The position numbers and the translations under genes were made by a program. This document shows, piece by piece, positions 19,601-48,125 of a DNA stretch of 64,000 bases (within the stretch, counting starts at the first letter, position 1; every line of letters starts with the position of its first letter). The notes beneath the pieces are model-generated. The model searched no databases. It saw only the letters and a list, made by a program, of their open reading frames with translations, and had not been told where the DNA came from. Source of the DNA: Macrostomum lignano (lineage: Eukaryota); NCBI GenBank assembly GCA_002269645.1, contig NIVC01000631.1, positions 1 through 64,000 on the forward strand. The letters run 5' to 3'.

Positions 19601-20266
19601 CAGGAGAATTGTTAACTGTTCCCAATTTTCTTCTTCATAATATTTTGAAGACAGTGGGGGTATATAGGAGTTTATTAAGGTAAAGCTTTTGTTTTTATCC
19701 TTTTTGTGTTTAAAATTTAGTGTCAAGAAGTTTTTATAATGTTTGAATGATTCTGTAACATTGTATTGTGTATCTAGTGACTTTTTGTAAGCTGTTAATA
19801 ATCCACCAGAAGCTCTGCCAATGAATTTACAGCCTTTTTTGTTTGCAGGCTTTTGGTATGTCATGTAGTTTTCAGACAGGTTGTTGATTTTGAGTCGCTT
19901 GTTTTCATTTTTTGTGTCTATTATCCAAGTTTCTTGAAGGCAGAGAATATTATTCTTAAAAATTGATTCAGTTTCCAGTAGTTCAAGTTTGGGAATCATC
20001 ACAGAGTCTTTTATTGTGTAAAGTCCATTGATATTCCAGCTGCTAATAGTAAATTTTTCTTTATCAATTTTTTGGATAATATTAAATTCAAGGAGTTTTG
20101 ATTTGATATTGTAAGGAATTTTTTTGATCTTTTGAGCATTGTTATTTCTAATAGAAATGAGGTACTCTCTAGTGTATTGTATCCGCTTTTCATTTGCCTG
20201 GATAATATTTTGACTATTTTGACCATTAAGTGTTGGGGTATTTAAGTCACAGTTTACAGAGGAAGT
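16664..20266 (-). CDS. LINE ORF2: apurinic endonuclease, reverse transcriptase, C-terminal CCHC
   Basis: APE motifs SWNINGL, LCLQETW, IGDFNAH, SVIDLCF, SDH; RT motifs YRGI, QYGF, DYEKAFDS, QGNPLS, LFADD, YLG; CKMC..HYLTEC. The frame is open 88 codons further upstream than the ORF track start (20002), up to the ORF1 stop. Confidence 0.95.
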   Translation of the reverse strand, partial: TSSVNCDLNTPTLNGQNSQNIIQANEKRIQYTREYLISIRNNNAQKIKKIPYNIKSKLLEFNIIQKIDKEKFTISSWNINGLYTIKDSVMIPKLELLETESIFKNNILCLQETWIIDTKNENKRLKINNLSENYMTYQKPANKKGCKFIGRASGGLLTAYKKSLDTQYNVTESFKHYKNFLTLNFKHKKDKNKSFTLINSYIPPLSSKYYEEENWEQLTILLDAYHSEENIFLIGDFNAHINNTSYIDLNSIYTTRAKNISLTRQSQDKKTCKNGRLLNQITDSYNLHLINGRSLSDTNGEFTFLSKSGSSVIDLCFVSTSLLQHLEDFKVKNHTYFSDHNQIVLSLSSEFTEEITETKQATNNSKTRYRVLKKSHKPNLQQEKHINNFANDLKNMNDKITNLDIQNPAFINELSRKVRQIQNNITVEIKNPLCSTLPRFLKDLRNAARHACRRYKTFPTPNNLSSKVQLKKAYEKKLTSWKFETTLCADNMINQAFIQNDTKQLWNLLKTPNPSNNRVTIDEKFIIHFQNLVTEQDSSIRLSYNLHLDNPILADLEDFNAPFTKEEVIKHIKKLKTDKAPGHDKVYVETLKYLENELADLLCSLFNEALKQGTFPTSWITNTLHPIYKNKGSSADPNNYRGICIQPILGKLFCQIIKSRLENLAYANNLISKYQYGFKPNHSTIDQCFNLYNIINQSIYNKEELFIGFVDYEKAFDSLNQPTLWHKTDNQGIKGQMTELIKNMHKNACFILKNDDDDDETQPIPISKGVLQGNPLSTILFELYIDDIVEYLELSSARRSLTRSAFPLILLFADDQAILAKNKDELQDTLTTMENYCKQNYFKVNASKTKFMQGNTRQKNDTESIATKIYYDNQEIEEVNEFKYLGIIFEPKNSFKKCIEHQTKQGYTAMFSLLHRVKNTSLDITLIRRLFDALVTPVITYGCELWGPLATMSDTKAIDNIQLKFYKYLLNLPKFASNSVVSSELELTPISQRIAKTYLIYWLKIRHKKLCQTTLEIFYSNTGQKNPWKMNVLKKLESIDLKALTEDKLSQSFNNEKYLVKKHLKIHRERELSQKLENQQHIKLYKNAYLYKKICRPDLSDFFPCTFRNKKFLTTLLKLKCEITPNFFSQEPCKMCGARNGSDILHYLTECPQTEEIRKKYFCQYLLNSNQIHKIGYATNEKRVRKELTGVAKIYEVMNS

Positions 20267-20776
20267 TCAGTAGGTTTTAATGAAGGGAACTCCCCTCTTA
20301 TAGCCAATTCGGATGTTTTTCTCACCATTTTCTTGACGAGTCTTAAGCTCTTTAACAATCTTCTGCTTAAATGCCCGTTCCTTTTCTGTTAAGTCGTTCT
20401 CGATCCGAATACGGGAGTAGGCAGAGCCAGTTTCGCGCAGGTTTCTCAGATTACCGAAGAAGGCCGCTTTGTCGCTATCGTTGACCAGCCGAACAACGAG
20501 GGGCCTTGGTCGATTGCTGAGAGGTTGTTCGCGACCGATCCGCCTGGTGGCGACAATTGGGACAGTTGCGGGGGACATTTTGAGCCCATCCTGCATAAAG
20601 TCCTCGAGCTTAGCGTCTTCTTGGAGTCCAAAAACTATGATGTTATTCTTCTTTATACCGCGCTGCCTGACTTCCTCCACGATTTCATCAAAGCTGATGT
20701 CGTAGGTGACAGTTTGCTTCCCGCTCTCAATCGACTCTAGCTCTTCTATGCGTTCTTCGAGGGCCGTCAGCTTTAA
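20267..20776 (-). CDS. LINE ORF1, C-terminal part (coiled coil plus RRM/CTD-type), 5'-truncated
   Basis: KLTALEERIEELESIE...KNNIIVFGLQE...RPRPLVVRL...IRIENDLT; frame open from 20776, no ATG before the coiled coil. Confidence 0.8.
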   Translation of the reverse strand, partial: LKLTALEERIEELESIESGKQTVTYDISFDEIVEEVRQRGIKKNNIIVFGLQEDAKLEDFMQDGLKMSPATVPIVATRRIGREQPLSNRPRPLVVRLVNDSDKAAFFGNLRNLRETGSAYSRIRIENDLTEKERAFKQKIVKELKTRQENGEKNIRIGYKRGVPFIKTY

Positions 20777-22909: not shown

Positions 22910-23260
22910 GACCAATAGCCTCACCAATATGGCTAATAGCGTCACCAATATGGCTAATAGCGTCACCAATATGGCTAATAGTGTCACCAATAAGGCTAAT
23001 AGTGTCACCAATATGGTTAATGGCGTCACCAATATGGCTAATAGCGTCACCAATATGGCTAATAGCGTCACCAATATGGCTAATAGCGTCACCAATATGG
23101 CTAATAGCGTCACCAATATGGCTAATAGCGTCACCAATATGGCTAATAGCGTCACCAATATGGCTAATAGCGTCACCAATAAGGCCAATATAGCGTCACC
23201 AATAGGGCTAATAGCGTCACCGATACGGCTAATAGCGTCACCGATACGGTTAATAGCATG
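22910..23260. repeat. Intronic minisatellite, 21-bp unit (ATGGCTAATAGCGTCACCAAT)
   Basis: About 16 copies; source of the spurious IASPIWL / MANSVTN ORFs. Confidence 0.95.
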
Positions 23261-23811: not shown

Positions 23812-23889
23812 CTGGGGCGGGTCGATGGGTACAGAGTGTTGAGTTTTGCACGGAACTATGGAACTTTGAATGCCGCAATGGGAAGGATC

Positions 23890-24490
23890 CGCTCACACAA
23901 CAGGACCCACACACAACTGGAGAACCCGCTCACACAACTGGAGAACCCGCTCACACAACTGGAGAACCCGCTCACACAACTGGAGAACCCGCTCACACAA
24001 CAGGAAAACTCGCTCACACAACAGGAAAACTCGCTCACACAACAGGAGAACCCGCTCACACAACAGAACCCGCTCACACAACAGGAAAACCCGCTCACAC
24101 AACAGGAAAACCCGCTCACACAACAGGAGAACCCGCTCACACAACAGAACCCGCTCACACAACAGAACCCGCTCACACAACAGAATTCTCTCACACAACA
24201 GAATTCGCTCACACAACAGAATTCGCTCACACAACAGGAGAACCCGCTCACATAACCCGCTCACATAATGGGAGAACCCACTCACACAATGGGAGAACCC
24301 ACTCATACAATGGGAGAACCCACTCACACAACAAGAGAACCCGCTCACACAACAAGAGAACCCACTCACACAACAGGAGAACCCGCTCACACAACAAGAG
24401 AACCCGCTCACACAACAAGAGAACCCGCTCACACAACAAGAGAAACCACTCACACAACAAGAGAACCTGCTCACACAACAGCACAGAGAG
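23890..24490. repeat. Intronic minisatellite, 21/18-bp units (CCCGCTCACACAACAGGAGAA)
   Basis: About 29 copies filling intron 23812-24513. Confidence 0.95.
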
Positions 24491-24859: not shown

Positions 24860-27006
24860 ATAGCATTATCGATTAATCACCCGATCAACGAATCACCCGA
24901 TCAGCTAATCATCTAGTCAACTAATCACACGATTAACTAATTGCCCGATCAACTAATTGCCCGATCAACTAATTACCCCATCAATTAATCACCCGATCAA
25001 CTAATTATCCGATCAACTAATCACCTGATCAACTAATTACCCGATCAACTAATCACCTGATCAACTAATTACCCGATCAACTAATTATCTGTTTAACTAA
25101 TCATCTAGTCAACTAATCACCCGATCAACTAATCACCCGATCAACTAATCATCCGATCAACTAATCACCCGATCAACTAATCACCCGATCAACTAATCAT
25201 CCGATCAACCAATCACCCGATCAACTAATTATCTGTTTAACTAATCATCTAGTCAAATAATCACCCGATCAACTAATCACCCGATCAACTAATCATCCGA
25301 TCAACTAATCACCCGATCAACTAATCACCCGATCAACTAATCATCCGATCAACCAATCACCCGATCAACTAATTATCTGTTTAACTAATCATCTAGTCAA
25401 ATAATCACCCGATCAACTAATCACCCGATCAACTAATCACCCGATCAACTAATCACCCGATCAACTAATCACCCGATCAACTAATCACCCGATCAACTAA
25501 TCACCTGATCAACTAATTACCCGATCAACTAATTATCTGTTTAACTAATCATCTAGTCAAATAATTACCCGATCAACTAATCACCCGATCAACTAATCAC
25601 CCGATCAACTAATCATCCGATTAACTAATCACCCGATCAACTAATCACCCGATCAACTAATCACCCGATCAACTAATTACCCGATCAACTAATCACCCGA
25701 TCAACTAATTACCCGATCAACTAATTATCTGTTTAACTAATCATCTAGTCAAATAATCACCCGATCAACTAATCACCCGATCAACTAATCATCCGATCAA
25801 CTAATCACCCGATCAACTAATCACCCGATCAACTAATCATCCGATCAACCAATCACCCGATCAACTAATTATCTGTTTAACTAATCATCTAGTCAAATAA
25901 TCACCCGATCAACTAATCACCCGATCAACTAATCACCCGATCAACTAATCACCCGATCAACTAATTACCCGATCAACTAATTACCCGATCAACTAATTAC
26001 CCGATCAACTAATTACCCGATCAACTAATCACCCGATCAACTAATCACCCGATCAACTAATTACCCGATCAACTAATTACCGATCAACTAATTACCCGAT
26101 CAACTAATTACCCGATCAACTAATCACCCGATCAACTAATCACCCGATCAACTAATCACCCGATCAACTAATCACCCGATCAACTAATCACCTGATCAAC
26201 TAATTACCCGATCAACTAATTATCTGTTTAACTAATCATCTAGTCAAATAATTACCCGATCAACTAATCACCCGATCAACTAATCACCCGATCAACTAAT
26301 CATCCGATTAACTAATCACCCGATCAACTAATCACCCGATCAACTAATCACCCGATCAACTAATTACCCGATCAACTAATCACCCGATCAACTAATTACC
26401 CGATCAACTAATTATCTGTTTAACTAATCATCTAGTCAAATAATCACCCGATCAACTAATCACCCGATCAACTAATCATCCGATCAACTAATCACCCGAT
26501 CAACTAATCACCCGATCAACTAATCATCCGATCAACCAATCACCCGATCAACTAATTACCCGATCAACTAATTACCCGATCAACTAATTACCCGATCAAC
26601 TAATTACCCGATCAACTAATCACCCGATCAACTAATCACCCGATCAACTAATCACCCGATCAACTAATTACCCGATCAACTAATTACCCGATCAACTAAT
26701 CACCCGATCAACTAATCACCCGATCAACTAATCACCCGATCAACTAATCACCCGATCAACTAATCACCCGATCAACTAATCACCCGATCAACTAATTACC
26801 CGATCAACTAATTATCTGTTTAACTAATCATCTAGTCAACTAATCACCCGATCAACTAATCACCCGATCAACTAATCACCCGATCAACTAATCACCCGAT
26901 CAACTAATCACCCGATCAACTAATTATCTGTTTAACTAATCATCTAGTCAACTAATCACCCGATCAACTAATCACCCGATCAACTAATCAACCGATCAAC
27001 TAATCA
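24860..27006. repeat. Intronic satellite, 16-bp unit (CCGATCAACTAATCAC) with recurring ~33-bp variant blocks
   Basis: About 130 units filling intron 24838-27053; the block tatctgtttaactaatcatctagtcaa recurs, giving higher-order structure. Confidence 0.95.
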
Positions 27007-27469: not shown

Positions 27470-28288
27470 CTGGCAGCGGAGCTGAGCAGGTGGGCTACCA
27501 GGCCGCGCACAACCCAGCTGGCGTTGGCCTCGCCCGGATGCACCCGGCCGCTGATGAAGACGCACGGTCGCTGCTGCCGCGGCTCCTCGCTAGCTGACGC
27601 CGCGGTCACAGTCAGCAATGGCAGGCGGTTGCCGCCAAGCGACTGGCACAGCCACTGCTGATGATAAGCGATGCTGGCGTCCCGGCTGGCAAGGAGTCGC
27701 CAGTCGCGCAGGTCAGCCATCAGCCTGGAGTAGGTGTACGGCACATAGTAAGCCAAATAGCAGATATCGCCAGAGTGCCGGAATGCAATAGAAAACGATG
27801 CGGTGTAGTAAGGCTTAGTGCCGGCCTGCTTAGCGCGCTGGTAGTGGTTGCGATAGTAGCAGACTCGAGTGCCGACTCGCAACCAGTGCGGCCTGCCCAG
27901 CTGGGCCTCCCTGCTGCTGTACATCAGCGGCCGCATGCCGCAATTGAACTGCGAGTTGGGCTTCTCGCAGTTGATAACGTTGAAACGATAGGCTGCCCCG
28001 GGCTGGACGTTGGCCAAGCGGAAGTAGAACCACTGCGTCTGGCCTCGGTGGCCAATGTCCGGGCACAGCAGCAGGTCGTATTCGCGTTCCCGGATCTGGA
28101 TGGCTCGACGCAGATTGCCAGACTCGAAGCGCGACTCAAATGTCAGGTGATCAACTGAGCCAGAGCCTATTGGGGACAGTTTCTCATCGCTGGCTGGTGG
28201 AGGCGGCTGGTGCTGCTGGTGCTGCTCAGCAACAATGGCATCAAGGTCGTAGACAACTCGGTTCAACACGTCGGACGGGTCGATCCAC
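27470..28288 (-). CDS. AGTPBP1: AGTPBP1 exon (CCP N-domain and RVHPGE Zn motif)
   Basis: WIDPSDVLNRVVYDLD...FESRFESGNL...QWFYF...LAYYVPYTYS...SGRVHPGEANASW; phases match both neighbours. Confidence 0.97.
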
Positions 28289-28429: not shown

Positions 28430-29340
28430 ACACTGGTTCAATAAGCGGAGATGCCGATCCTTAAGCGGAGATGCAGATTCATTAAGCGGAGATGCAGATT
28501 CATTAAGCGGAGATGCCAATTCATTAAGCGGAGATGCCAATTCATTAAGCGGAGATGCAGATTCATCAAGCGGAGATGCAAATTCATTAAGCGGAGATGC
28601 CAATTCATTAAGCGGAGATGCCAATTCATTAAGCGGAGATGCCAATTCATTAAGCGGAGGATGCCAGTACATCAAGCGGAGATGCCGATTCATTAAGCGG
28701 AGGATGCCAGTACATCAAGCGGAGATGCCGATTCATTAAGCGGAGATGCCGATTCATTAAGCGGAGATGCAAATTCATTAAGCGGAGGATGCCAGTACAT
28801 CAAGCGGAGATGCCGATTCATTAAGCGGAGATGCCGATTCATTAAACGGAGATGCAGATTCAACAAACAGAGATACCGATTCAACAAGCAGAGAAACCGA
28901 TTCAACAAACAGAGATACCGATTCAACAAGCAGAGAAACCGATTCAACAAACAGAGATACCGATTCAACAAACAGAGAAACCGATTCAACAAACAGAGAT
29001 ACCGATTCAACAAACAGAGAAACCGATTCAACAAGCAGAGATACCGATTCAACAAACAGAGATACCGATTCAACAAGCAGAGAAACCGATTCAACAAACA
29101 GAGATACCGATTCAACAAACAGAGAAACCGATTCAACAAGCAGAGATACCGATTCAACAAACAGAGATACCGATTCAACAAACAGAGATACCGATTCAAC
29201 AAACAGAGATACCGATTCAACAAACAGAGAAACCGATTCAACAAGCAGAGATACCGATTCAACAAACAGAGATACCGATTCAACAAACAGAGATACCGAT
29301 TCAACAAACAGAGATACCGATTCAACAAGCAGAGATACGG
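28430..29340. repeat. Two adjacent, related 21-bp minisatellites (GCGGAGATGCCRATTCATTAA then ACAGAGATACCGATTCAACAA)
   Basis: Switch at ~28850; both units share the core GAGATRCCGATTCA. Confidence 0.95.
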
Positions 29341-29402
29341 ATTTAATAAGCAGAGAAGTCAATTAGCAACCTAAGTTTCTACTAAGAAGTTATCAAGCCA
29401 AC

Positions 29403-31794: not shown

Positions 31795-33707
31795 CTAATA
31801 TAGAATAGTTGGAAAAAGTATTTTATTGTTAAGTATTTATTCTAAATAAAAAGTACAAGGAAAAAACTCACAGGTCCATGGTGAATAGCTTGCTGTTTTT
31901 TTAAATCTTTTGCCTATATTTCAAGCTGCAACTAAAGGTTTTCATGAATTCTTTTATTTAATGAATTAAACATAGCATTAGAAAAACTTTCAAGGTAAAA
32001 CTCAAATCAAACTTTTGATTCTAAAAAACAATAGTGCTATATTCAGATTGTATGTCTAAAAATTGTAATTTGTTGCAATATTCAACTTTGCCAGCACACT
32101 TCTATATATTTAAATCATATACTAACTTTGGATATCATGGGATATTATTAATTTAGACTCATTTCTCTTATAATACACTATCTACATTTTATATATAGCA
32201 GTATGCATACCGAAATATTACTTTGAATTCCATAAATAAAAAGGCATAAAATTGTAATTTAAAATGAGAATATTACTTTTATTTACTTTAATCTCCAGTT
32301 TACTCTTGCAATTCGACTTACAAGAAGCAACAGATTATGACCTGTAGGGAAATAACCTATGGCCCTATTTTTTGTTTTATGTCCTAGCACATAAAGTACT
32401 AGAAAGAATTTTTTCGAAAACTAAGCCAAAATAAAACGTCAAAAATTCATAAAACCAGCTATCTCTCTCTCAGGGTGAAAAATTCTAAAAGATGCTATTA
32501 AATATCATAAAATTTTGATAGTCTATCGGTTAAATTTAAACTAAAACTAACAAGATGATAAATAAAAATTGAAACCACCACGATAACTAACTCATTAACA
32601 GACTTGAGGGTTAACTCCTAACTAACTGTACGCCAACTTCGAAGAAATAGCGTGCAACCAATCCATCTTGAATCCGACACCAACAACTCAGGCACGCTCA
32701 TTCAAAAACCATTAAAACAAATGTGATAATGCGGTACATTACCTGAAATTTGCATTAAGGACTGACAATGTAGAAATACAAAAGCATTTTTGTAGCACTA
32801 AAATCAGGCTCTGTATTCCCAACATATTTTGTGCTCCTTCTATTTCTGTATTTGGAGTTAGTCCACGAATTCGAAAGACATAATCATAGTCATATACATG
32901 TATGTCTTTCGAATGTCATGTGATATGCATGTAGGATTTTGGAAAGGGTGGGTATAACTCCGATTCGGATTTGATAGTAAATAGATTGCTGTTCAAATTT
33001 TGCACTATGGCAGCTATTTTGCTCCGCGGACCCGAACACGCGGTGCGCGCTCTATATGGGGTTGCTCGATCATTTGCGACAAACATTACTTCAATTGTCC
33101 ACTATTGTAACGAATGAAGTAATCTGAGTAAAGTGGCTTAAACATAATGTACCATGGAAATATCTAATATTATACAGTGTTTCTTCGAAACCTATACTCC
33201 CTTAAAAATTGATTCATCATGATGCACTTGAAAGGCCAAAAACTACATGTACAGGTATACATGTATGTTTCTGTAAATACGATTATGTTGAAAGTAAATA
33301 TATTAGTAAGTATAGCTTGCATGTACATTCACGTTTGGGATATGTGAATTGTGAATCTATACGTGCGAAGGCACATCCATGGCTATCATGATGTTATATC
33401 ATGTGTTTCAAAAGTTCATGCTTTCTTATAGAAAAAAATCTAATTCAGTTTTACATGTAAAAAGTTAATAACACCTATACATGTATTGGATAGGACTTAT
33501 AATTCTTTCTTCCGGTCTATATAAATGTATTTAATTATTTGCTTAAACACTTTCAATCCGCTTCACCAAGACAGCTATAGCGATAGGATTTCGCGAATAA
33601 ACAAGTCGAGAAAACTCGAGTAAAATTTAGGTGCAAAGATTTTCTAGGTTCCAATTATAAAAGTGCAGCAACTGTCCAATAAGAATTACTACTACCCAGC
33701 GGACCAA

Positions 33708-34064
33708 TCAATCAGAGGTTCTCAAGAAGAAGCAGACGGCACAGCAGCAGCCGTCAGCATTGAGGCCGCAGGCTTCGTAGCACTGCATGGCAGTGGATCG
33801 GCAACGAAACACGCAGACACGGTACAGACCTCGCTTGGCCCGCGACATCTGGTGATGATGCAGATGCGCCTCCGTAGCGTTGGCAACAATTCGCCGCATC
33901 AGGCGCGGGTTGGCCAGCACCTTGGCCGTCTCCTCGTCCTCGATCTCCAGCGGCAGCACCGTCCGGGTGGCGGTGGGACCGTCGGAAAGCTGCTGCTGCT
34001 GGCTAACGCCGATCAGGCAGGCGGCAGCAGCGCCCAGAAGGAAGAGCAGGCAGAGAGACTTCAT
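33708..34064 (-). CDS. Intronless secreted prepro-peptide with furin site (RAKR) and 40-aa 8-Cys mature peptide; family unknown
   Basis: Hydrophobic signal MKSLCLLFLLGAAAACLIG, pro-region, RAKR|GLYRVCVFRCRSTAMQCYEACGLNADGCCCAVCFFLRTSD; GC3-rich codons against AT-rich flanks; candidate ATTAAA at 33530-33535. Confidence 0.8.
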   Translation of the reverse strand: MKSLCLLFLLGAAAACLIGVSQQQQLSDGPTATRTVLPLEIEDEETAKVLANPRLMRRIVANATEAHLHHHQMSRAKRGLYRVCVFRCRSTAMQCYEACGLNADGCCCAVCFFLRTSD

Positions 34065-35224
34065 GTCAGGTTTGAGAGCTCAAATTAAGCTTTTCAAGTA
34101 TAGTTCAATAGAGAAAGAATTAAATATTCGGATGAAGATTCTTGGAAGAGCTGCAACATGCTTCAAATATATAGACAAATTGAGCATGCGGATGTCAACA
34201 CTTATAGCTGCTTGGATCGTGAAATAATAACAGGCCAAATATGGAAATCGGAAACAAAGTTAATTTACACCATGTACACGCGTGCCAGATGTTGTCAGCT
34301 TGTTCAAGAATTGAATAAACAAACTTTGTTGTTGATCCGCCATAAAGCCTTCATGGGCGACCAAAATTAACAGTCAAGACTGTCAATAATATAGTATCAA
34401 ACTAGCGCGACTCATACAGTTGTTAAAGGAGATTCTACTTGGAATTATATGTATGAATACTTTACACACTCGCATGCATCTATTACGGGCTTAAATTTCT
34501 TATTGCGTTGAATATGAATCAATTCTACACGCGAAACACGGATATTCAAATATTAGAAAATTACAATAAATGGCTAATTGCAACTCAAGAATTCCAAAAT
34601 CGTCTTCCTAATAATAGGTACAAAAGCTATTATAATAAATGCATCAAAAATATTTTACTCCAGAATGTGATGACTCTAAAAGAGAGTCGAACATCCAATA
34701 TTCTCTTGATGAACAATTCATACATCTGAAGGCTTAACAATCTCTTTTTGAAAATACTGTTTTCTACTAGCTTTTTCGGAGGGTACAAACAAAAAACCTT
34801 TTTGTCTTAATTCGTTATTGCTCGTAAATTACTCTTATTCGTATAGTAAAATTCATGGTAGTCGTTACGTTTTGCTACGTTTTTTCCGCAACGTCCGCGA
34901 GGGTCTGCGGAGTCGCCGTGGGTGGCCATTCGTTCTATGACGGCAGTGCCTGCAGTCCTAGAGGCCCTTCATTTACCACAATGCCACTAATTTAAAGCAC
35001 CCTCGCTTTGCTGGGTTGCTAAGCAAGGCGCCACATTCACGCCCACATCTCGATGATTTCCTTGACCTTACGAGTATTTTCTCAACCGTTGAAGGCGCTC
35101 AGCAACTCAGTAAATAAGCTAGTCGAGAAATACATGTTTATAAGTACGTACGAGTACATGCAAATAGATAGTTGCGTGTAAATATATGTACAGGTAGTAA
35201 GCACATGTGACTGCCAGCAAGTTC

Positions 35225-35281
<57 letters not shown>

Positions 35282-35290
35282 GATTGATAT

Positions 35291-35353
<63 letters not shown>

Positions 35354-35354
35354 T

Positions 35355-35409
<55 letters not shown>

Positions 35410-35430
35410 TAGATAGATAGATAGATAGAT

Positions 35431-35492
<62 letters not shown>

Positions 35493-35528
35493 TGATAGAT
35501 TGATAAATAGATAGATAGATAGATAGAC

Positions 35529-35585
<57 letters not shown>
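35225..35585. repeat. (GATA)n microsatellite, left of the 272-bp array
   Basis: AGAT tetranucleotide run with few interruptions. Confidence 0.98.
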
Positions 35586-35586
<1 letters not shown>

Positions 35587-38500
35587 TAGATAGCGAGAAA
35601 GAGCGAGCGAAGCGAGCTCTTTCGAGCTTGCTTGCCGCAGCCAATCAAGCTGAAAGCACGCACACAAGATCACCGGAAACGATTAAGGCAGCTGGAAAGC
35701 CAATGGGCGCGGTAAGCGCTTTTATCCAGAGGAACTACCTGCTGGAACCAGCCTGCCGTTCGAAAATCAGACTACTCAAGTAGTGCAAAAGAGTGCGAGC
35801 AACTACCGAGAAATCTAATTTTCGTAACCGCTCCGGTGCAGGTCCTGGCAATAGATGGTAGATAGCGAGAAAGAGCGAGCGAAGCGAGCTCTTTCGAGCT
35901 TGCTTGCCGCAGCCAATCAAGCTGAAAGCACGCACACAAGATCACCGGAAACGATTAAGGCAGCTGGAAAGCCAATGGGCGCGGTAAGCGCTTTTATCCA
36001 GAGGAACTACCTGCTGGAACCAGCCTGCCGTTCGAAAATCAGACTACTCAAGTAGTGCAAAAGAGTGCGAGCAACTACCGAGAAATCTAATTTTCGTAAC
36101 CGCTCCGGTGCAGGTCCTGGCAATAGATGGTAGATAGCGAGAAAGAGCGAGCGAAGCGAGCTCTTTCGAGCTTGCTTGCCGCAGCCAATCAAGCTGAAAG
36201 CACGCACACAAGATCACCGGAAACGATTAAGGCAGCTGGAAAGCCAATGGGCGCGGTAAGCGCTTTTATCCAGAGGAACTACCTGCTGGAACCAGCCTGC
36301 CGTTCGAAAATCAGACTACTCAAGTAGTGCAAAAGAGTGCGAGCAACTACCGAGAAATCTAATTTTCGTAACCGCTCCGGTGCAGGTCCTGGCAATAGAT
36401 GGTAGATAGCGAGAAAGAGCGAGCGAAGCGAGCTCTTTCGAGCTTGCTTGCCGCAGCCAATCAAGCTGAAAGCACGCACACAAGATCACCGGAAACGATT
36501 AAGGCAGCTGGAAAGCCAATGGGCGCGGTAAGCGCTTTTATCCAGAGGAACTACCTGCTGGAACCAGCCTGCCGTTCGAAAATCAGACTACTCAAGTAGT
36601 GCAAAAGAGTGCGAGCAACTACCGAGAAATCTAATTTTCGTAACCGCTCCGGTGCAGGTCCTGGCAATAGATGGTAGATAGCGAGAAAGAGCGAGCGAAG
36701 CGAGCTCTTTCGAGCTTGCTTGCCGCAGCCAATCAAGCTGAAAGCACGCACACAAGATCACCGGAAACGATTAAGGCAGCTGGAAAGCCAATGGGCGCGG
36801 TAAGCGCTTTTATCCAGAGGAACTACCTGCTGGAACCAGCCTGCCGTTCGAAAATCAGACTACTCAAGTAGTGCAAAAGAGTGCGAGCAACTACCGAGAA
36901 ATCTAATTTTCGTAACCGCTCCGGTGCAGGTCCTGGCAATAGATGGTAGATAGCGAGAAAGAGCGAGCGAAGCGAGCTCTTTCGAGCTTGCTTGCCGCAG
37001 CCAATCAAGCTGAAAGCACGCACACAAGATCACCGGAAACGATTAAGGCAGCTGGAAAGCCAATGGGCGCGGTAAGCGCTTTTATCCAGAGGAACTACCT
37101 GCTGGAACCAGCCTGCCGTTCGAAAATCAGACTACTCAAGTAGTGCAAAAGAGTGCGAGCAACTACCGAGAAGTCTAATTTTCGTAACCGCTCCGGTGCA
37201 GGTCCTGGCAATAGATGGTAGATAGCGAGAAATAGCGAGCGAAGCGAGCTCTTTCGAGCTTGCTTGCCGCAGCCAATCAAGCTGAAAGCACGCACACAAG
37301 ATCACCGGAAACGATTAAGGCAGCTGGAAAGCCAATGGGCGCGGTAAGCGCTTTTATCCAGAGGAACTACCTGCTGGAACCAGCCTGCCGTTCGAAAATC
37401 AGACTACTCAAGTAGTGCAAAAGAGTGCGAGCAACTACCGAGAAATCTAATTTTCGTAACCGCTCCGGTGCAGGTCCTGGCAATAGATGGTAGATAGCGA
37501 GAAAGAGCGAGCGAAGCGAGCTCTTTCGAGCTTGCTTGCCGCAGCCAATCAAGCTGAAAGCACGCACACAAGATCACCGGAAACGATTAAGGCAGCTGGA
37601 AAGCCAATGGGCGCGGTAAGCGCTTTTATCCAGAGGAACTACCTGCTGGAACCAGCCTGCCGTTCGAAAATCAGACTACTCAAGTAGTGCAAAAGAGTGC
37701 GAGCAACTACCGAGAAATCTAATTTTCGTAACCGCTCCGGTGCAGGTCCTGGCAATAGATGGTAGATAGCGAGAAAGAGCGAGCGAAGCGAGCTCTTTCG
37801 AGCTTGCTTGCCGCAGCCAATCAAGCTGAAAGCACGCACACAAGATCACCGGAAACGATTAAGGCAGCTGGAAAGCCAATGGGCGCGGTAAGCGCTTTTA
37901 TCCAGAGGAACTACCTGCTGGAACCAGCCTGCCGTTCGAAAATCAGACTACTCAAGTAGTGCAAAAGAGTGCGAGCAACTACCGAGAAATCTAATTTTCG
38001 TAACCGCTCCGGTGCAGGTCCTGGCAATAGATGGTAGATAGCGAGAAAGAGCGAGCGAAGCGAGCTCTTTCGAGCTTGCTTGCCGCAGCCAATCAAGCTG
38101 AAAGCACGCACACAAGATCACCGGAAACGATTAAGGCAGCTGGAAAGCCAATGGGCGCGGTAAGCGCTTTTATCCAGAGGAACTACCTGCTGGAACCAGC
38201 CTGCCGTTCGAAAATCAGACTACTCAAGTAGTGCAAAAGAGTGCGAGCAACTACCGAGAAATCTAATTTTCGTAACCGCTCCGGTGCAGGTCCTGGCAAT
38301 AGATGGTAGATAGCGAGAAAGAGCGAGCGAAGCGAGCTCTTTCGAGCTTGCTTGCCGCAGCCAATCAAGCTGAAAGCACGCACACAAGATCACCGGAAAC
38401 GATTAAGGCAGCTGGAAAGCCAATGGGCGCGGTAAGCGCTTTTATCCAGAGGAACTACCTGCTGGAACCAGCCTGCCGTTCGAAAATCAGACTACTCAAG

Positions 38501-41500
38501 TAGTGCAAAAGAGTGCGAGCAACTACCGAGAAATCTAATTTTCGTAACCGCTCCGGTGCAGGTCCTGGCAATAGATGGTAGATAGCGAGAAAGAGCGAGC
38601 GAAGCGAGCTCTTTCGAGCTTGCTTGCCGCAGCCAATCAAGCTGAAAGCACGCACACAAGATCACCGGAAACGATTAAGGCAGCTGGAAAGCCAATGGGC
38701 GCGGTAAGCGCTTTTATCCAGAGGAACTACCTGCTGGAACCAGCCTGCCGTTCGAAAATCAGACTACTCAAGTAGTGCAAAAGAGTGCGAGCAACTACCG
38801 AGAAATCTAATTTTCGTAACCGCTCCGGTGCAGGTCCTGGCAATAGATGGTAGATAGCGAGAAAGAGCGAGCGAAGCGAGCTCTTTCGAGCTTGCTTGCC
38901 GCAGCCAATCAAGCTGAAAGCACGCACACAAGATCACCGGAAACGATTAAGGCAGCTGGAAAGCCAATGGGCGCGGTAAGCGCTTTTATCCAGAGGAACT
39001 ACCTGCTGGAACCAGCCTGCCGTTCGAAAATCAGACTACTCAAGTAGTGCAAAAGAGTGCGAGCAACTACCGAGAAATCTAATTTTCGTAACCGCTCCGG
39101 TGCAGGTCCTGGCAATAGATGGTAGATAGCGAGAAAGAGCGAGCGAAGCGAGCTCTTTCGAGCTTGCTTGCCGCAGCCAATCAAGCTGAAAGCACGCACA
39201 CAAGATCACCGGAAACGATTAAGGCAGCTGGAAAGCCAATGGGCGCGGTAAGCGCTTTTATCCAGAGGAACTACCTGCTGGAACCAGCCTGCCGTTCGAA
39301 AATCAGACTACTCAAGTAGTGCAAAAGAGTGCGAGCAACTACCGAGAAATCTAATTTTCGTAACCGCTCCGGTGCAGGTCCTGGCAATAGATGGTAGATA
39401 GCGAGAAAGAGCGAGCGAAGCGAGCTCTTTCGAGCTTGCTTGCCGCAGCCAATCAAGCTGAAAGCACGCACACAAGATCACCGGAAACGATTAAGGCAGC
39501 TGGAAAGCCAATGGGCGCGGTAAGCGCTTTTATCCAGAGGAACTACCTGCTGGAACCAGCCTGCCGTTCGAAAATCAGACTACTCAAGTAGTGCAAAAGA
39601 GTGCGAGCAACTACCGAGAAATCTAATTTTCGTAACCGCTCCGGTGCAGGTCCTGGCAATAGATGGTAGATAGCGAGAAAGAGCGAGCGAAGCGAGCTCT
39701 TTCGAGCTTGCTTGCCGCAGCCAATCAAGCTGAAAGCACGCACACAAGATCACCGGAAACGATTAAGGCAGCTGGAAAGCCAATGGGCGCGGTAAGCGCT
39801 TTTATCCAGAGGAACTACCTGCTGGAACCAGCCTGCCGTTCGAAAATCAGACTACTCAAGTAGTGCAAAAGAGTGCGAGCAACTACCGAGAAATCTAATT
39901 TTCGTAACCGCTCCGGTGCAGGTCCTGGCAATAGATGGTAGATAGCGAGAAATAGCGAGCGAAGCGAGCTCTTTCGAGCTTGCTTGCCGCAGCCAATCAA
40001 GCTGAAAGCACGCACACAAGATCACCGGAAACGATTAAGGCAGCTGGAAAGCCAATGGGCGCGGTAAGCGCTTTTATCCAGAGGAACTACCTGCTGGAAC
40101 CAGCCTGCCGTTCGAAAATCAGACTACTCAAGTAGTGCAAAAGAGTGCGAGCAACTACCGAGAAATCTAATTTTCGTAACCGCTCCGGTGCAGGTCCTGG
40201 CAATAGATGGTAGATAGCGAGAAAGAGCGAGCGAAGCGAGCTCTTTCGAGCTTGCTTGCCGCAGCCAATCAAGCTGAAAGCACGCACACAAGATCACCGG
40301 AAACGATTAAGGCAGCTGGAAAGCCAATGGGCGCGGTAAGCGCTTTTATCCAGAGGAACTACCTGCTGGAACCAGCCTGCCGTTCGAAAATCAGACTACT
40401 CAAGTAGTGCAAAAGAGTGCGAGCAACTACCGAGAAATCTAATTTTCGTAACCGCTCCGGTGCAGGTCCTGGCAATAGATGGTAGATAGCGAGAAAGAGC
40501 GAGCGAAGCGAGCTCTTTCGAGCTTGCTTGCCGCAGCCAATCAAGCTGAAAGCACGCACACAAGATCACCGGAAACGATTAAGGCAGCTGGAAAGCCAAT
40601 GGGCGCGGTAAGCGCTTTTATCCAGAGGAACTACCTGCTGGAACCAGCCTGCCGTTCGAAAATCAGACTACTCAAGTAGTGCAAAAGAGTGCGAGCAACT
40701 ACCGAGAAATCTAATTTTCGTAACCGCTCCGGTGCAGGTCCTGGCAATAGATGGTAGATAGCGAGAAAGAGCGAGCGAAGCGAGCTCTTTCGAGCTTGCT
40801 TGCCGCAGCCAATCAAGCTGAAAGCACGCACACAAGATCACCGGAAACGATTAAGGCAGCTGGAAAGCCAATGGGCGCGGTAAGCGCTTTTATCCAGAGG
40901 AACTACCTGCTGGAACCAGCCTGCCGTTCGAAAATCAGACTACTCAAGTAGTGCAAAAGAGTGCGAGCAACTACCGAGAAATCTAATTTTCGTAACCGCT
41001 CCGGTGCAGGTCCTGGCAATAGATGGTAGATAGCGAGAAAGAGCGAGCGAAGCGAGCTCTTTCGAGCTTGCTTGCCGCAGCCAATCAAGCTGAAAGCACG
41101 CACACAAGATCACCGGAAACGATTAAGGCAGCTGGAAAGCCAATGGGCGCGGTAAGCGCTTTTATCCAGAGGAACTACCTGCTGGAACCAGCCTGCCGTT
41201 CGAAAATCAGACTACTCAAGTAGTGCAAAAGAGTGCGAGCAACTACCGAGAAATCTAATTTTCGTAACCGCTCCGGTGCAGGTCCTGGCAATAGATGGTA
41301 GATAGCGAGAAAGAGCGAGCGAAGCGAGCTCTTTCGAGCTTGCTTGCCGCAGCCAATCAAGCTGAAAGCACGCACACAAGATCACCGGAAACGATTAAGG
41401 CAGCTGGAAAGCCAATGGGCGCGGTAAGCGCTTTTATCCAGAGGAACTACCTGCTGGAACCAGCCTGCCGTTCGAAAATCAGACTACTCAAGTAGTGCAA

Positions 41501-43871
41501 AAGAGTGCGAGCAACTACCGAGAAATCTAATTTTCGTAACCGCTCCGGTGCAGGTCCTGGCAATAGATGGTAGATAGCGAGAAAGAGCGAGCGAAGCGAG
41601 CTCTTTCGAGCTTGCTTGCCGCAGCCAATCAAGCTGAAAGCACGCACACAAGATCACCGGAAACGATTAAGGCAGCTGGAAAGCCAATGGGCGCGGTAAG
41701 CGCTTTTATCCAGAGGAACTACCTGCTGGAACCAGCCTGCCGTTCGAAAATCAGACTACTCAAGTAGTGCAAAAGAGTGCGAGCAACTACCGAGAAATCT
41801 AATTTTCGTAACCGCTCCGGTGCAGGTCCTGGCAATAGATGGTAGATAGCGAGAAAGAGCGAGCGAAGCGAGCTCTTTCGAGCTTGCTTGCCGCAGCCAA
41901 TCAAGCTGAAAGCACGCACACAAGATCACCGGAAACGATTAAGGCAGCTGGAAAGCCAATGGGCGCGGTAAGCGCTTTTATCCAGAGGAACTACCTGCTG
42001 GAACCAGCCTGCCGTTCGAAAATCAGACTACTCAAGTAGTGCAAAAGAGTGCGAGCAACTACCGAGAAATCTAATTTTCGTAACCGCTCCGGTGCAGGTC
42101 CTGGCAATAGATGGTAGATAGCGAGAAAGAGCGAGCGAAGCGAGCTCTTTCGAGCTTGCTTGCCGCAGCCAATCAAGCTGAAAGCACGCACACAAGATCA
42201 CCGGAAACGATTAAGGCAGCTGGAAAGCCAATGGGCGCGGTAAGCGCTTTTATCCAGAGGAACTACCTGCTGGAACCAGCCTGCCGTTCGAAAATCAGAC
42301 TACTCAAGTAGTGCAAAAGAGTGCGAGCAACTACCGAGAAATCTAATTTTCGTAACCGCTCCGGTGCAGGTCCTGGCAATAGATGGTAGATAGCGAGAAA
42401 GAGCGAGCGAAGCGAGCTCTTTCGAGCTTGCTTGCCGCAGCCAATCAAGCTGAAAGCACGCACACAAGATCACCGGAAACGATTAAGGCAGCTGGAAAGC
42501 CAATGGGCGCGGTAAGCGCTTTTATCCAGAGGAACTACCTGCTGGAACCAGCCTGCCGTTCGAAAATCAGACTACTCAAGTAGTGCAAAAGAGTGCGAGC
42601 AACTACCGAGAAATCTAATTTTCGTAACCGCTCCGGTGCAGGTCCTGGCAATAGATGGTAGATAGCGAGAAAGAGCGAGCGAAGCGAGCTCTTTCGAGCT
42701 TGCTTGCCGCAGCCAATCAAGCTGAAAGCACGCACACAAGATCACCGGAAACGATTAAGGCAGCTGGAAAGCCAATGGGCGCGGTAAGCGCTTTTATCCA
42801 GAGGAACTACCTGCTGGAACCAGCCTGCCGTTCGAAAATCAGACTACTCAAGTAGTGCAAAAGAGTGCGAGCAACTACCGAGAAATCTAATTTTCGTAAC
42901 CGCTCCGGTGCAGGTCCTGGCAATAGATGGTAGATAGCGAGAAAGAGCGAGCGAAGCGAGCTCTTTCGAGCTTGCTTGCCGCAGCCAATCAAGCTGAAAG
43001 CACGCACACAAGATCACCGGAAACGATTAAGGCAGCTGGAAAGCCAATGGGCGCGGTAAGCGCTTTTATCCAGAGGAACTACCTGCTGGAACCAGCCTGC
43101 CGTTCGAAAATCAGACTACTCAAGTAGTGCAAAAGAGTGCGAGCAACTACCGAGAAATCTAATTTTCGTAACCGCTCCGGTGCAGGTCCTGGCAATAGAT
43201 GGTAGATAGCGAGAAAGAGCGAGCGAAGCGAGCTCTTTCGAGCTTGCTTGCCGCAGCCAATCAAGCTGAAAGCACGCACACAAGATCACCGGAAACGATT
43301 AAGGCAGCTGGAAAGCCAATGGGCGCGGTAAGCGCTTTTATCCAGAGGAACTACCTGCTGGAACCAGCCTGCCGTTCGAAAATCAGACTACTCAAGTAGT
43401 GCAAAAGAGTGCGAGCAACTACCGAGAAATCTAATTTTCGTAACCGCTCCGGTGCAGGTCCTGGCAATAGATGGTAGATAGCGAGAAAGAGCGAGCGAAG
43501 CGAGCTCTTTCGAGCTTGCTTGCCGCAGCCAATCAAGCTGAAAGCACGCACACAAGATCACCGGAAACGATTAAGGCAGCTGGAAAGCCAATGGGCGCGG
43601 TAAGCGCTTTTATCCAGAGGAACTACCTGCTGGAACCAGCCTGCCGTTCGAAAATCAGACTACTCAAGTAGTGCAAAAGAGTGCGAGCAACTACCGAGAA
43701 ATCTAATTTTCGTAACCGCTCCGGTGCAGGTCCTGGCAATAGATGGTAGATAGCGAGAAAGAGCGAGCGAAGCGAGCTCTTTCGAGCTTGCTTGCCGCAG
43801 CCAATCAAGCTGAAAGCACGCACACAAGATCACCGGAAACGATTAAGGCAGCTGGAAAGCCAATGGGCGCG
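35586..43871. repeat. Head-to-tail tandem array, 272-bp unit x ~30.5, near-identical
   Basis: ORF track recurs every 272 bp; the only variants I spotted are A>G at 37173 and G>T at 37233 and 39953. Confidence 0.98.
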
Positions 43872-44418
<547 letters not shown>

Positions 44419-45038
44419 AATCGATATACTAAAATTAAATTTTAAATCTTTAGTACCATAAGCCAAAACTGGTTAATCAATACGACACTGTAAAAGTCAT
44501 AAGCATTTATTGCACAGGTAATTCTAAAAAAATGGTTCAATTAATTTAAACCGAAAGTTAAGCTCGCCAGGATTGTTCTGCTTTGAATAATTTGGACGCA
44601 AGAAAAAATATTTGCCAGTTTGCCAGTAATGTATTTCACAAATCCAATACGATTCAAGTCTGCACAAATACAACTACAACTACTAGAGATAAATATTGGT
44701 AAGTAGTGTGGCATGCAAATTCTCTACATATTTATGATAAGAAAAACGGATTTACACAGCGGATTACACAGAGCAGATGTAGAAGTTAATTTACTCCTAG
44801 TCCTTAAGAATCACTGTTTTTTTGTTGGATCTGTCGAAGAAAAAAAATTAGGGGTCATTTCAAGTCGACTCTAATTAGAAATGATCACAACAGTGAAAAC
44901 AAAAGCAAAATAACCTACTCATTGAAAATTCACCTACTCATTTTAGTAGCCAAATAAGCATTTTTCTGTATTTTTTAATTAAAAAAGACCAGAAAGCGAC
45001 ACTGGCCACAAATTTCCTGCTCATTACTTTGGAAACGT

Positions 45039-45455
45039 CTAATCGCCCCGTTTCTGCCGGACCACAGCAGCCAGATAATACTCGCCAGCTTTGTAAGACG
45101 ATCGAACCAGGGGACCGGAGGCCACGTACAGAAATCCCATAGCTTTGCCGCGCTCTTCCCAGCTTTTGAATGCCTCGGGTGTGACGTAATCTCGCACCTT
45201 CAGGTGCCGCTTGGTTGGCTGAACGTACTGGCCCAGGGTGAGCGCCTCAACGCCCACGCTGCGCAGGTCCTCCATCGCCTTGAGAATCTCATCGTCCGTC
45301 TCTCCGAGCCCGAGCATCAGGCTGCTCTTGGTCACCACGTCCGGTCGGCAACGTTTCGCGTGGCTCAGCGCGTCCAACGATTGGCGATAAGTGGCTTTGG
45401 GATCGCGGACAAGGCGCTGCAGCGATTCAACTGTCTCCAGGTTGTGGGCCAGCAC
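45039..45455 (-). CDS. LIAS: Lipoyl synthase exon 2
   Basis: VLAHNLETV...[12 protein letters not shown]...LTLGQYVQP...[14 protein letters not shown]; tcccag| acceptor, phase 0. Confidence 0.97.
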
Positions 45456-45761
45456 CTGGGAGTGTGTTGAGTGAATATCAGAGCAATAGTATACCCTACC
45501 ATATGCAACCGTTTGCTTTTCAAGAGCGGGTGATGCAAGCAGCCTATTCTGCTGTGTACTAACCGCGCCAAACGCTGCTTAACTTCTTACTGAAACAAAC
45601 CAGTAGCCTGACCAGTAACCAGAAATAACGTTAAATCTTCCACACTATAACTGTAACTAAATTTGAATCGGTGGGACTACTTTTACTACTTATAGTAGCC
45701 TATGACAGATAGTGAGAAAAAATTGCAAGACGGCTTGTGGGCACCCTGGCGCAATACCTTT

Positions 45762-45955
45762 CTGCGACATCGCCCAGCAACCAGCGCATAGACGGCAATT
45801 CTGCAAATTCCGCTGACTACTGAGCACATACAAGCGTACCAATACTGTACTCAGGCACGCACTCACACAGGGTGTACACCGGCTCTGACTTTGAAATCGT
45901 CAGGCAAGTACATTTTCTGTGCCTTTGGGGGTTGGCCCTTGTGAATCGCACGACA
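45762..45955 (+). mobile_element. Dispersed ~200-bp repeat family, copy 5 (in LIAS intron)
   Basis: gcgacatcg...ctgagcacatacaagcg...cagggtgtacaccggctct...gggggttggccct. Confidence 0.7.
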
Positions 45956-46343
45956 ACCTCCAAGTGAATTTTCGTACTCTATCTTAACTTTGCCTACTAT
46001 TATGTAATACGCGAGGTGATGAAGAACACAGCTAATAGGAGGCGAAGTAGCCTAGCAAATAAGCGGCAAACTCGTCCGAATCTCGTGCCAGGAGCCTTGG
46101 ATCGACATGGGGCCACCCTTTGCCCCAGTGAGCAGTGTCTTCCGACCAGCGTCCATCACCTGGCCGAGTCGCAAAAATGCCCACCAAAAACAGACTGAGT
46201 ACTAATTAGATGACGAGGCATTTAGCCTTAATAAAACATTAAATTATAGTTACTCCTGCCGTTTACCCAAAATTGCGTTAATTTTGAGGGTATTTTTTAC
46301 AGATAAGTCGCACGGCCCAGTGCAAATCAGGGGGTTGCGCATG

Positions 46344-47313
46344 TACTTCGGGTGTGTCAAAAGTTATGTCACTGATGTGAAAACAGACGAACTTGCAATC
46401 GCAGATGAACAAAACTGTACCACTCAACAATATAGAGTCCCCCAATATCAATCACTCTCTGGCAGTGCTCATACAGCTTGTCCACCTCAGCCTGCAGGTG
46501 TTTTTAATCCAACAGCCATAACCAGTGCAACGCGGCCTGTTTGACCTCTTCATGATTTGCGAAACTCTTCTTGGAAAAGTCAGCCTTTAGCCATTTGAAC
46601 AGAAATCTGTCGCACAAGTTGAGGTCCGGGCTGTAGGGACTCTGTCAGAGCAGATTCACTCGCCGTGCAGGTAGAAAATCCGAAACAGGCTTACAGGTGT
46701 GCGGCCGTGTGGTGTCCACCTGCCACAGAACCTCGTCCAGGAGACATGGATTTGACCGGAGAGTGCGCCAGAGGTCCCCAGTGTGCCGGGCAAAAGCGGA
46801 TAAAAACTACTGACAATTGAACTTGACGTTTGACCCTCGATGAGACATCTTTGTTTGGCGTAAAGGCCACCAGCAGCATGGTCTTCTTGTCCGAGACGGA
46901 CCTCGTGGTCACGGTCGGCAGCAGACCCCAGCTCCTAGCCAGCAGCGATTGTCTGCCTCGCTGCCCTTGCCATCCAGGTGGAGCCAGCTTTCATCCTCAG
47001 CAACCAGGCAGTTTAGGATGTCATTCAAGCCCCGGCTGCTGAACACCTTGCGGATCTGCTTGGTGCAGGCGTCTTGTCGAGATTCATGGTGATTTTTGTT
47101 TGCTGCATAGACGAGTTTTCATCGCGTTGCACTTGCTAAATCTGCTTGGCGTATTCTTGCGATAGCTTGGGCCATAAACAACCTATGCACGTCTCAAATG
47201 CACTGGTATTGCTTCACTAAGTATACTTTGCAGCTACACTACCCACAAGTCCATGTGCCTACATTTTTTAGACAGAGGCCTGCAGTGACATTGCTTATGA
47301 CACACCCGAAGTA
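46344..47313 (-). mobile_element. Degenerate Tc1/mariner element with ~28-bp TIRs and TA target duplication
   Basis: TA-cttcgggtgtgtcaaaagttatgtcact (46344-46373) versus agtgacattgcttatgacacacccgaag-TA (47284-47313); broken transposase motifs LVAEDESWLH, KKTMLLVAF, PYSPDLNLCD, CQRVIDIGGLYI. Confidence 0.88.
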
Positions 47314-47477
47314 TGAATCCATCAAATCTCCGCCCTCCGCTCTTCCCAATCCCTCCTCAACCAGCCCAACTCTGCAAGGTGCGTCACTCAAAAGTCAATA
47401 CGTATACGTATACTCAGGTGCCAGCGTTATTAATGGGAATTAATAATAATCTATTAATAAATTAATGAATGATTCAC

Positions 47478-48125
47478 CTGCGGTCCGCTTAAAACCACCG
47501 TCTCCATGCAGTCTGGCCGGCCGCGGAAATCCGGCACCAGGCATTCGACTAGCATGTCTGGCCTTAGGCGCAGAATCTCGGACACGGTGGCGCCAATGTG
47601 TCCGGCGCCGCCGTCAGCTAAGTCGTCCCGATCAACGGAGGTCAGCACAACGTAGTGACCGGACCAGCCGGCCACAGCCTTGGCGGTGTTGGCAGGCTCC
47701 ATCGGATCCAGCGGCGGCGGCTTTAGGCTGGTCTTGACCGAGCAGAACCGACAGGCCCTGGTGCAAGTGTCGCCCATCAGCATGATGGTGGCCGTGGCCG
47801 CCTCGCCGCTCCAGCATTCGCCAATATTCGGACAGCGGGCCTCCTCGCACACTGTATGCAGCTTCAACTGACGGAGGCTGCGCTGCATCTTGGCGAACTG
47901 TCCGCCAGCCGGGATCTCCCGCTTAAGCCAGTCTGGCAGTCGTAGCCGCGCCGGAGGCCGCTGCGCATTGGGCAGGAAATCCTCCAGGCCCGGCCCGCCG
48001 GCCACGCGGTTCTTCTGCGCATGGCTGAGGCTGCACAGACTGGCGCGGCGGCTGCGCAGGATGATTGTTGCTGGGCAGCGGATCGCGTCCACTGCTAGAA
48101 TGCGTTGCTGATTGACTAGAGCCAT
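47478..48125 (-). CDS. LIAS: Lipoyl synthase exon 1 with mitochondrial transit-like N-terminus
   Basis: ATG at 48125; [12 protein letters not shown] (CX4CX5C) and CTRACRFC (radical SAM CX3CX2C); CAG|gtgaat donor. Confidence 0.97.

Follow-up and report, generated by a model that had tools for sequence, protein, structure and literature searches.

A 64,000-nucleotide (nt) stretch of the Macrostomum lignano genome (contig NIVC01000631.1, positions 1 to 64,000; hereafter, the window) carries on its minus strand a complete single-exon coding sequence (CDS; 33708..34064) for a cysteine-rich prepropeptide, with 118 codons followed by a TGA stop. With a probability of about 60%, we consider it a genuine gene whose product is a secreted peptide, processed by a convertase, rich in disulfides and belonging to an undescribed family; secretion, cleavage, disulfide map and function are what we infer from the sequence. 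The ATG, located at the 34064 end, is preceded by an in-frame TGA 18 nt upstream, with no other ATG in between. A first-pass annotation, made from the letters of the DNA, had placed the open reading frame (ORF) at these positions, and the match is exact (118 amino acids [aa] from the ATG), with the correction that the gene lies on the minus strand.

Residues 1 to 21 form the predicted signal peptide (MKSLCLLFLLGAAAACLIGVS; 34002..34064, on the minus strand like all the features of the precursor given below), as indicated by hydropathy, the -3/-1 rule and the translation, in line with the signal sequence initially proposed. It shows a basic n-region (MKS), a hydrophobic core of 17 residues and, at -3/-1, small residues, followed by QQQQ, and inspection of the sequence suggests possible cleavage after residues 14 to 16 (A15/C16), G19 or S21. 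With S21 taken as the last residue of the signal peptide, translation gives a pro-region of 57 aa (QQQQLSDGPTATRTVLPLEIEDEETAKVLANPRLMRRIVANATEAHLHHHQMSRAKR; 33831..34001), which had been described as acidic and His-rich. The sequence has an acidic patch, EIEDEE (33930-33947), and a His cluster, HLHHH (33852-33866), but the pro-region is not acidic as a whole, since its net charge is +1. It also carries an internal basic site, RLMRR (33891-33905), and an N-glycosylation sequon, NAT (33873-33881). The furin site anticipated by the first-pass annotation is present as R75-A-K-R78 (33831..33842), a consensus furin/proprotein-convertase (PC) site (R-X-K/R-R) that abuts G79 and where cleavage would be expected. 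The predicted mature peptide (GLYRVCVFRCRSTAMQCYEACGLNADGCCCAVCFFLRTSD; 33711..33830) spans the last 40 residues, and residue analysis revealed an even number of cysteines (8) arranged as C84-x3-C88-x6-C95-x3-C99-x6-C106-C107-C108-x2-C111, exactly the spacing that had been given for it (C-x3-C-x6-C-x3-C-x6-CCC-x2-C, with a CCC triplet). It lacks an amidation signal and is near-neutral and hydrophobic (net charge of +1, isoelectric point [pI] of 7.7, grand average of hydropathy of +0.48).

We propose that the 118-aa product would enter the endoplasmic reticulum via its N-terminal signal peptide and that its C-terminal domain would undergo oxidative folding with the formation of four disulfides. 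A furin/PC-type convertase would cut after R78, in the Golgi or in secretory granules, possibly with a further cut of the pro-region at RLMRR, and the HLHHH cluster could help with packing in a pH- or metal-dependent manner. The outcome would be the release of a 4.4-kDa, 40-residue, four-disulfide, non-amidated, near-neutral hydrophobic peptide.

The window gene has a sister copy in M. lignano, the protein PAA58103.1 (BOX15_Mlig027746g1, “hypothetical protein”), which is 98% identical (98.3% for the ORF between copies). On scaffold NIVC01002410.1, the sister gene is flanked by the genes for lipoyl synthase (LIAS) and the cytosolic carboxypeptidase CCP1, and the three share a strand. Gene order and orientation are the same in the window, where the ORF lies between LIAS exons (45.0-48.1 kb) and CCP1 exons (27.5-30.7 kb), and the alignment of the two loci consists of blocks of 89-99% identity parted by large indels. 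M. lignano is a neopolyploid whose assembly holds around three paralogous copies of most regions, with single-nucleotide polymorphisms at around 2% between copies (1.1% in CDS) and numerous large indels (Zadesenets 2023, PMC10733133). The window is thus a copy of the annotated locus, either paralogous or assembled alternatively. No paralogue of the peptide gene was found inside the 64-kb window. The statement that the gene is intronless among intron-rich neighbors is true for the CDS: the sister NCBI gene model is intronless and spans exactly 357 nt, while LIAS (352 aa over 2.1 kb) and CCP1 (1,231 aa over more than 8.3 kb) are split by introns on the same scaffold.

The GenBank annotation of this genome was built only from transcript assemblies of RNA sequencing (RNA-seq) reads (StringTie/TACO plus de novo assemblies), with ORFs called by TransDecoder, boundaries taken from trans-splicing and poly(A) reads, and noncoding and repeat-overlapping transcripts removed (Wudarski 2017, PMC5730564). 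Since this annotation is purely RNA-seq derived, a transcript exists for PAA58103.1. The absence of a transcript, which the first-pass annotation had named as something that would overturn its reading, is in this way answered indirectly, by the sister copy.

The ORF forms a sharp GC island (62% GC, with 76% GC at third codon positions [GC3]) between flanks of 33-35% GC, and its composition equals that of conserved exons elsewhere in the window (LIAS, CCP1 and the receptor; GC3 of 71-75%). The high-GC3 phase is confined to its own frame, and the choice of Cys codons (TGC:TGT, 9:1) is host-like. Eight cysteines in 40 codons would be rare under the local base composition (P of around 8e−5). Between the two copies, the ORF accumulated six substitutions and no indels: four alter a third position without changing the amino acid, and the other two are conservative replacements (I41V and S117T). 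The flanks are 94-97% identical and contain indels, and the first 200 nt past the stop are 97% identical. The Nei-Gojobori method gave a dS of 0.047 and a dN of 0.0076 between the two copies (dN/dS of 0.16; P of around 0.04). The sister copy retains all 8 cysteines, the signal sequence and the RAKR site, S117T being the sole difference in the mature peptide.

These data bear on the possibility that the ORF is spurious, i.e., that a GC-rich stretch of a noncoding transcript or untranslated region remained open for 118 codons by chance, with a signal-like start and cysteines that are mere coincidence. We regard this as improbable: the first ATG downstream of an in-frame stop opens a canonical signal sequence, which is found together with an RXKR site and an even set of cysteines in the last 40 residues, the codon usage is host-like in one frame only, and four of the six differences between copies are synonymous, without indels despite those in the flanks. 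On the other side, the gene has no homologues, and the antisense strand is open too (33663..34088, plus strand), which is common in GC-rich DNA. The antisense ORF had no homologue and no Pfam match, the substitutions between copies fall on first positions in its frame, and an Rfam scan gave no match.

Several points weigh against our reading of a real peptide gene. Around 4% of the mononucleotide-shuffled versions of the GC-rich segment stay open, and 118 aa barely exceeds the usual TransDecoder limit of 100 aa, above which any ORF is called; both are in line with a chance ORF. The transcript support comes from the annotation of the sister copy and not from reads on the window copy, which is unannotated in the protein collection, where the exact window protein is absent. 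The gene ID Mlig027746 is also absent from the supplementary data of five M. lignano papers. The conservation is that of two recently diverged paralogues with six substitutions between them. The full-length AlphaFold2 (AF2) model was poor (predicted local distance difference test [pLDDT] of 41), and no feature separates a role in signaling from one in defense or in reproductive/gland secretion.

The spacing of the cysteines had been noted as unrecognized, and a clear match to a known family had been named as a second outcome that would overturn the reading. None was found by profile, sequence or structure searches (HMMER, Pfam and Foldseek). Pfam searches with the whole protein, the 40-mer and the pro-region gave only subthreshold noise (Glyco_trans_1_2, E value of 0.099; AtzG-like, E value of 0.15). 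A word-indexed search of 5.8 billion proteins retrieved the sister copy only, and a HMMER search of 1.84 billion representatives retrieved the sister copy and one other sequence (P0002), with no credible relative among them. A sequence search of the PDB gave no match. Foldseek, run with the model of the 40-mer against the PDB, returned 0 matches, which is the usual outcome for 40-residue queries. The strings of peptide fragments, the gene ID and the accessions were not mentioned in the searchable literature.

The second HMMER hit, P0002, is a 608-aa ORF from a 9.5-kb ENA metagenome contig. It has no signal peptide and consists of nine tandem units of 59 aa with 5 cysteines each (C-x3-C-G-x5-C-x-C-x3-C), the matched part being C-x3-C-G-x5-C-x-C. 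Its score of 40 bits is the sum over nine copies of one weak match, and we therefore rejected it as a relative and took it for a translated DNA repeat. Prepropeptides that give rise to a disulfide-rich secreted peptide are a familiar kind. The sequence family and its Cys framework are undescribed in the sources searched, and the gene itself had already been deposited as a hypothetical protein. It is so far seen only in M. lignano and appears to be lineage restricted. Since the databases hold few proteomes of free-living flatworms, “orphan” here means that no relative has been deposited, not that the gene is absent from other macrostomids.

The single-sequence AF2 model of the 40-mer reached a pLDDT of 75, and both AF2 runs, with and without the rest of the precursor, predicted a strand at residues 80-86, a short helix at around 92-99 and a strand at 108-115. 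C84 is in the strand in both models, and C88 is just beyond it. Reading the spacing, we propose a compact strand-helix-strand fold in which the helix pair C95-x3-C99 would be pinned to C106-x-C108 of the last strand (C95-C106 and C99-C108), the classical pairing of a cysteine-stabilized helix. C84 and C88 could in turn be laddered to C111 and C107 between antiparallel strands (C84-C111 and C88-C107), as C84 and C88 are four residues apart, like C107 and C111, a register that fits a two-rung ladder. The CCC triplet would then result from cysteines on a single strand that point by turns to the helix and to the ladder. With low odds, the peptide might found a new fold, strand-helix-strand with four disulfides (framework C-C-C-C-CCC-C), in flatworms, which are reported to be without cysteine-stabilized αβ (CSαβ) peptides.

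The CSαβ peptides themselves (defensins and scorpion toxins) offer a possible parallel. Judging from the spacing, the window peptide may resemble them in having a C-x3-C in the predicted helix (C95 and C99), a C-x-C in the predicted C-terminal strand (C106 and C108) and a predicted strand-helix-strand order. In contrast, the window peptide has a helix-to-strand loop of 6 residues and lacks a third strand and the Gly-x-Cys element, and it had no Pfam, PDB-sequence or Foldseek match to this class. The resemblance to hepcidin, defensins and venom peptides put forward by the first-pass annotation is one of architecture only, and no profile matched. Hepcidin is also made as a prepropeptide that releases a peptide of around 25-42 residues with 8 cysteines, some of them adjacent, as here. 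The hepcidin family (PF06446) had no Pfam match with either the whole protein or the 40-mer at E values of up to 10. The Cys spacing of hepcidin is different from that of the window peptide.

Other cysteine frameworks were compared as well. The α-hairpinins and κ-KTx peptides (cysteine-stabilized αα, with 4 cysteines and two antiparallel helices) are built on a twin C-x3-C that is also found in the window peptide (C84/C88 and C95/C99), whereas in the latter C84 is in a strand (AF2), the two motifs are just 6 residues apart, and 4 more cysteines are present. No Pfam toxin family matched in the comparison with conotoxin frameworks, and a string test found C-C-C-C-CCC-C in the searchable literature only inside the 9-Cys pattern of the centipede SLPTX16. 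The reported conotoxin framework with a CCC, as compared by literature strings, is C-C-C-CCC-C-C, unlike that of the window peptide. Some exclusions followed from the composition of the protein: a metallothionein-like metal binder was dropped on account of the signal peptide and aromatic residues, an insulin-like peptide because the A-chain pattern CC-x3-C-x8-C is missing, and a membrane anchor because the C-terminal hydrophobic run has just around 10 residues. By its description, the product is akin to Cragi-CCCGS of Crassostrea gigas, an orphan peptide without relatives that is likewise released from a prepropeptide and has 8 cysteines in 42 aa, some of them adjacent (Réalis-Doyelle 2021, PMC8398477).

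Close parallels in precursor layout are CLCCY and CCWamide, lophotrochozoan prohormones of Platynereis dumerilii, which have, like the window precursor, a signal peptide, a short pro-region, a KR(R) site and a single C-terminal peptide with 8 cysteines. In these systems, the peptide has around 45 residues and the precursor around 90-120 aa (Conzelmann 2013 supplement). The Cys spacing of CLCCY is knottin-like (C-x6-C-x7-CC-x4-C-x8-C-x7-C-x-C) and unlike that of the window peptide. Membership in CLCCY/CCWamide is excluded by this spacing, and the sequence similarity is at chance level (BLASTP E value of 0.24; shuffle P of 0.22 and 0.47).

A weak likeness was observed with trissin, an arthropod neuropeptide with 6 cysteines that is the ligand of a class A G-protein-coupled receptor (GPCR). 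With the crab sequence STVSCDSCGPECQTACGTKNFRACCFNFL (from PMC8449533), we obtained a gapless alignment that placed five of the six trissin cysteines and the A-C-G motif onto C88, C95, C99, C107 and C108 (BLASTP E value of 0.012 in this one comparison). Locally, the two peptides share C-x6-C-x2-A-C-G-x6-CC, and past the run of cysteines both have a hydrophobic tail of aromatic residues and Leu (F-x-[FY]-L or FFL). Composition-preserving shuffles gave a P of 0.004, compared with 0.22 and 0.47 for CLCCY and CCWamide, a value that is biased because trissin was chosen for looking similar. We hold it to be very improbable that the window peptide is a spiralian neuropeptide of the trissin type, strongly derived and signaling through lophotrochozoan orthologues of the arthropod trissin GPCR that are still orphan. 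The hhalign probability was just 18%, and no trissin precursor was found among the HMMER matches (all representatives). Trissin has its 6 cysteines as C-x2-C-x3-C-x3-C-x7-CC; the window peptide lacks the second of them and has three extra ones, and it shows neither the trissin motif CGxEC..ACGT..FR.CCFN[YF]L nor the six-Cys spacing. The position in the precursor differs as well: arthropod trissin directly follows the signal peptide, while the window peptide is C-terminal, after a pro-region of 57 aa. In P0003, P0004 (Drosophila) and the crab precursor, trissin is at the N terminus of the propeptide; in the layout expected of trissin, a dibasic site and then the rest of the precursor would come next. 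P0004, the Drosophila product, diverges midway through the trissin peptide. The likeness is worth mentioning because the lophotrochozoan orthologues of the trissin receptor are still without a known ligand (Thiel 2021, PMC8557429), and it provides one concrete receptor hypothesis. With low odds, the peptide might be a much diverged flatworm member of spiralian trissin-type peptides to which a fourth disulfide was added, and a candidate ligand of these orphan receptors.

Within our reading of a secreted disulfide-rich peptide, the role that we favor, tentatively and at well under even odds, is that of an extracellular ligand (hormone-, neuropeptide- or growth-factor-like). What suggests it is that the precursor is laid out like the Cys-rich prohormones of spiralians, that the peptide is neutral in charge, that the gene is single copy and that it is under purifying selection. 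Lophotrochozoan precursors with the same layout usually serve in signaling. The near-neutral charge, the single copy per paralogous block and the purifying selection also weakly disfavor an antimicrobial peptide of the classical cationic type or a toxin family undergoing expansion.

A role in host defense is unlikely by our estimate. The product would be an antimicrobial peptide of the epidermis or gut, with a pro-region that holds the effector inactive until the convertase cut, as in hepcidin and defensin precursors. The prepro architecture with a C-terminal 8-Cys peptide and the possible CxxxC/CxC motif are consistent with this, and Cys-rich peptides dominate the predicted sets of helminth antimicrobial-like sequences (Irvine 2023, PMC10414684). 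Nevertheless, the net charge of +1 and the pI of 7.7 are unlike those of the strongly cationic majority of such peptides, and there was no Pfam match to the hepcidin, defensin or macin families. The gene has no tandem paralogue in 64 kb, selection between copies is purifying rather than diversifying, and the CSαβ, big-defensin and myticalin families are reported to be missing from flatworms (Irvine 2023, PMC10414684).

Slightly less doubtful, in our view, is a reproductive, adhesive or toxin-like gland secretion, namely a prostate/seminal-fluid, rhabdite or pharyngeal gland product acting on the partner or the prey. The conotoxin-like prepro layout and the intronless CDS fit this possibility. 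M. lignano eats diatoms and is not known to be venomous, which counts against it, as does the good conservation of the sequence between paralogues. In its favor, small, fast-evolving, lineage-restricted secreted orphans are typical of Macrostomum reproductive glands (Weber 2018, PMC5977470; Brand 2020, PMC7336406). The gene ID is not in the supplementary tables of the latter study (Brand 2020, PMC7336406), which is weak evidence against a gland product given the mixed identifiers used there.

If the peptide is real and bioactive, the few disulfide-rich peptides that flatworms are known to secrete would gain a new cysteine framework. Flatworm peptide hormones are mostly short and amidated, and the classical Cys-rich antimicrobial families seem to be absent from the phylum. 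M. lignano is amenable to transgenesis and RNA interference, so expression and function are directly testable. Otherwise, this would be one among many lineage-restricted small secreted proteins, as orphan Cys-rich ones are common in invertebrate genomes, and nothing so far points to an unusual mechanism.

Putative signals for transcription are found on both sides of the CDS. A TATA-like element (TATATATTT; 34165..34173, minus strand) is located 101-109 nt 5' of the ATG and is kept in the sister copy, where it might likewise act as a promoter element. A candidate poly(A) signal region (AATAATTAAA, AATAAT/ATTAAA; 33530..33539, minus strand) lies around 170-180 nt past the stop codon; in the sister copy, the AATAAT part is kept and the ATTAAA part is split by a 2-nt insertion.

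Upstream of the peptide gene, at a distance of 1.5 kb, there is an 8.3-kb tandem array of 272-bp units (35579-43871; 30.5 copies, 99% identity, 51% GC), flanked by (AGAT)n (35225-35593) and (ATAG)n (43879-44419). The paralogous scaffold L001 lacks the array and has just the tetranucleotide microsatellite at this place; the array is thus a recent insertion or expansion within a microsatellite, one that tells the subgenome copies apart. It is followed by the LIAS exons (LIAS_N and Radical_SAM; 45039-48143, minus strand). The block at 47311-53743 is 99.3% identical to L001, compared with 89-96% in the downstream blocks, which indicates uneven divergence between paralogous blocks.

On the other side of the peptide gene, the CCP1-like gene (around 24.5-31.2 kb, minus strand; TPR_CCP1_N and Pepdidase_M14_N exons) has several long minisatellites within or beside it, at 24874-27006 (16 bp × 133), 28463-29356 (21 bp × 42), 23889-24481 and 22914-23257 (21 bp). 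Their copy numbers differ from those of the paralogous scaffold. ARAGORN called a 95-nt tRNA-Ala (AGC) antisense to a CCP1 exon (27799-27893, plus strand), which is probably a false positive because Rfam detected no tRNA there. An apparently intact non-long-terminal-repeat retrotransposon is found further along, with an ORF2 of 1,112 aa (16664-20002, minus strand) carrying endonuclease and RVT_1 (E value of 6e−32) domains and, upstream, an ORF1-like ORF of 137 aa without a Pfam match (20267-20680, minus strand). Its composition (35% GC) is AT-rich compared with that of the host exons. At the opposite end of the window, the first exon of a receptor (54884-55321, plus strand) encodes a signal peptide and an ANF_receptor ligand-binding region and resembles class C GPCRs/metabotropic glutamate receptors. 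It is followed by a 1.4-kb minisatellite (53 bp × 27; 55452-56899) that is presumably intronic.

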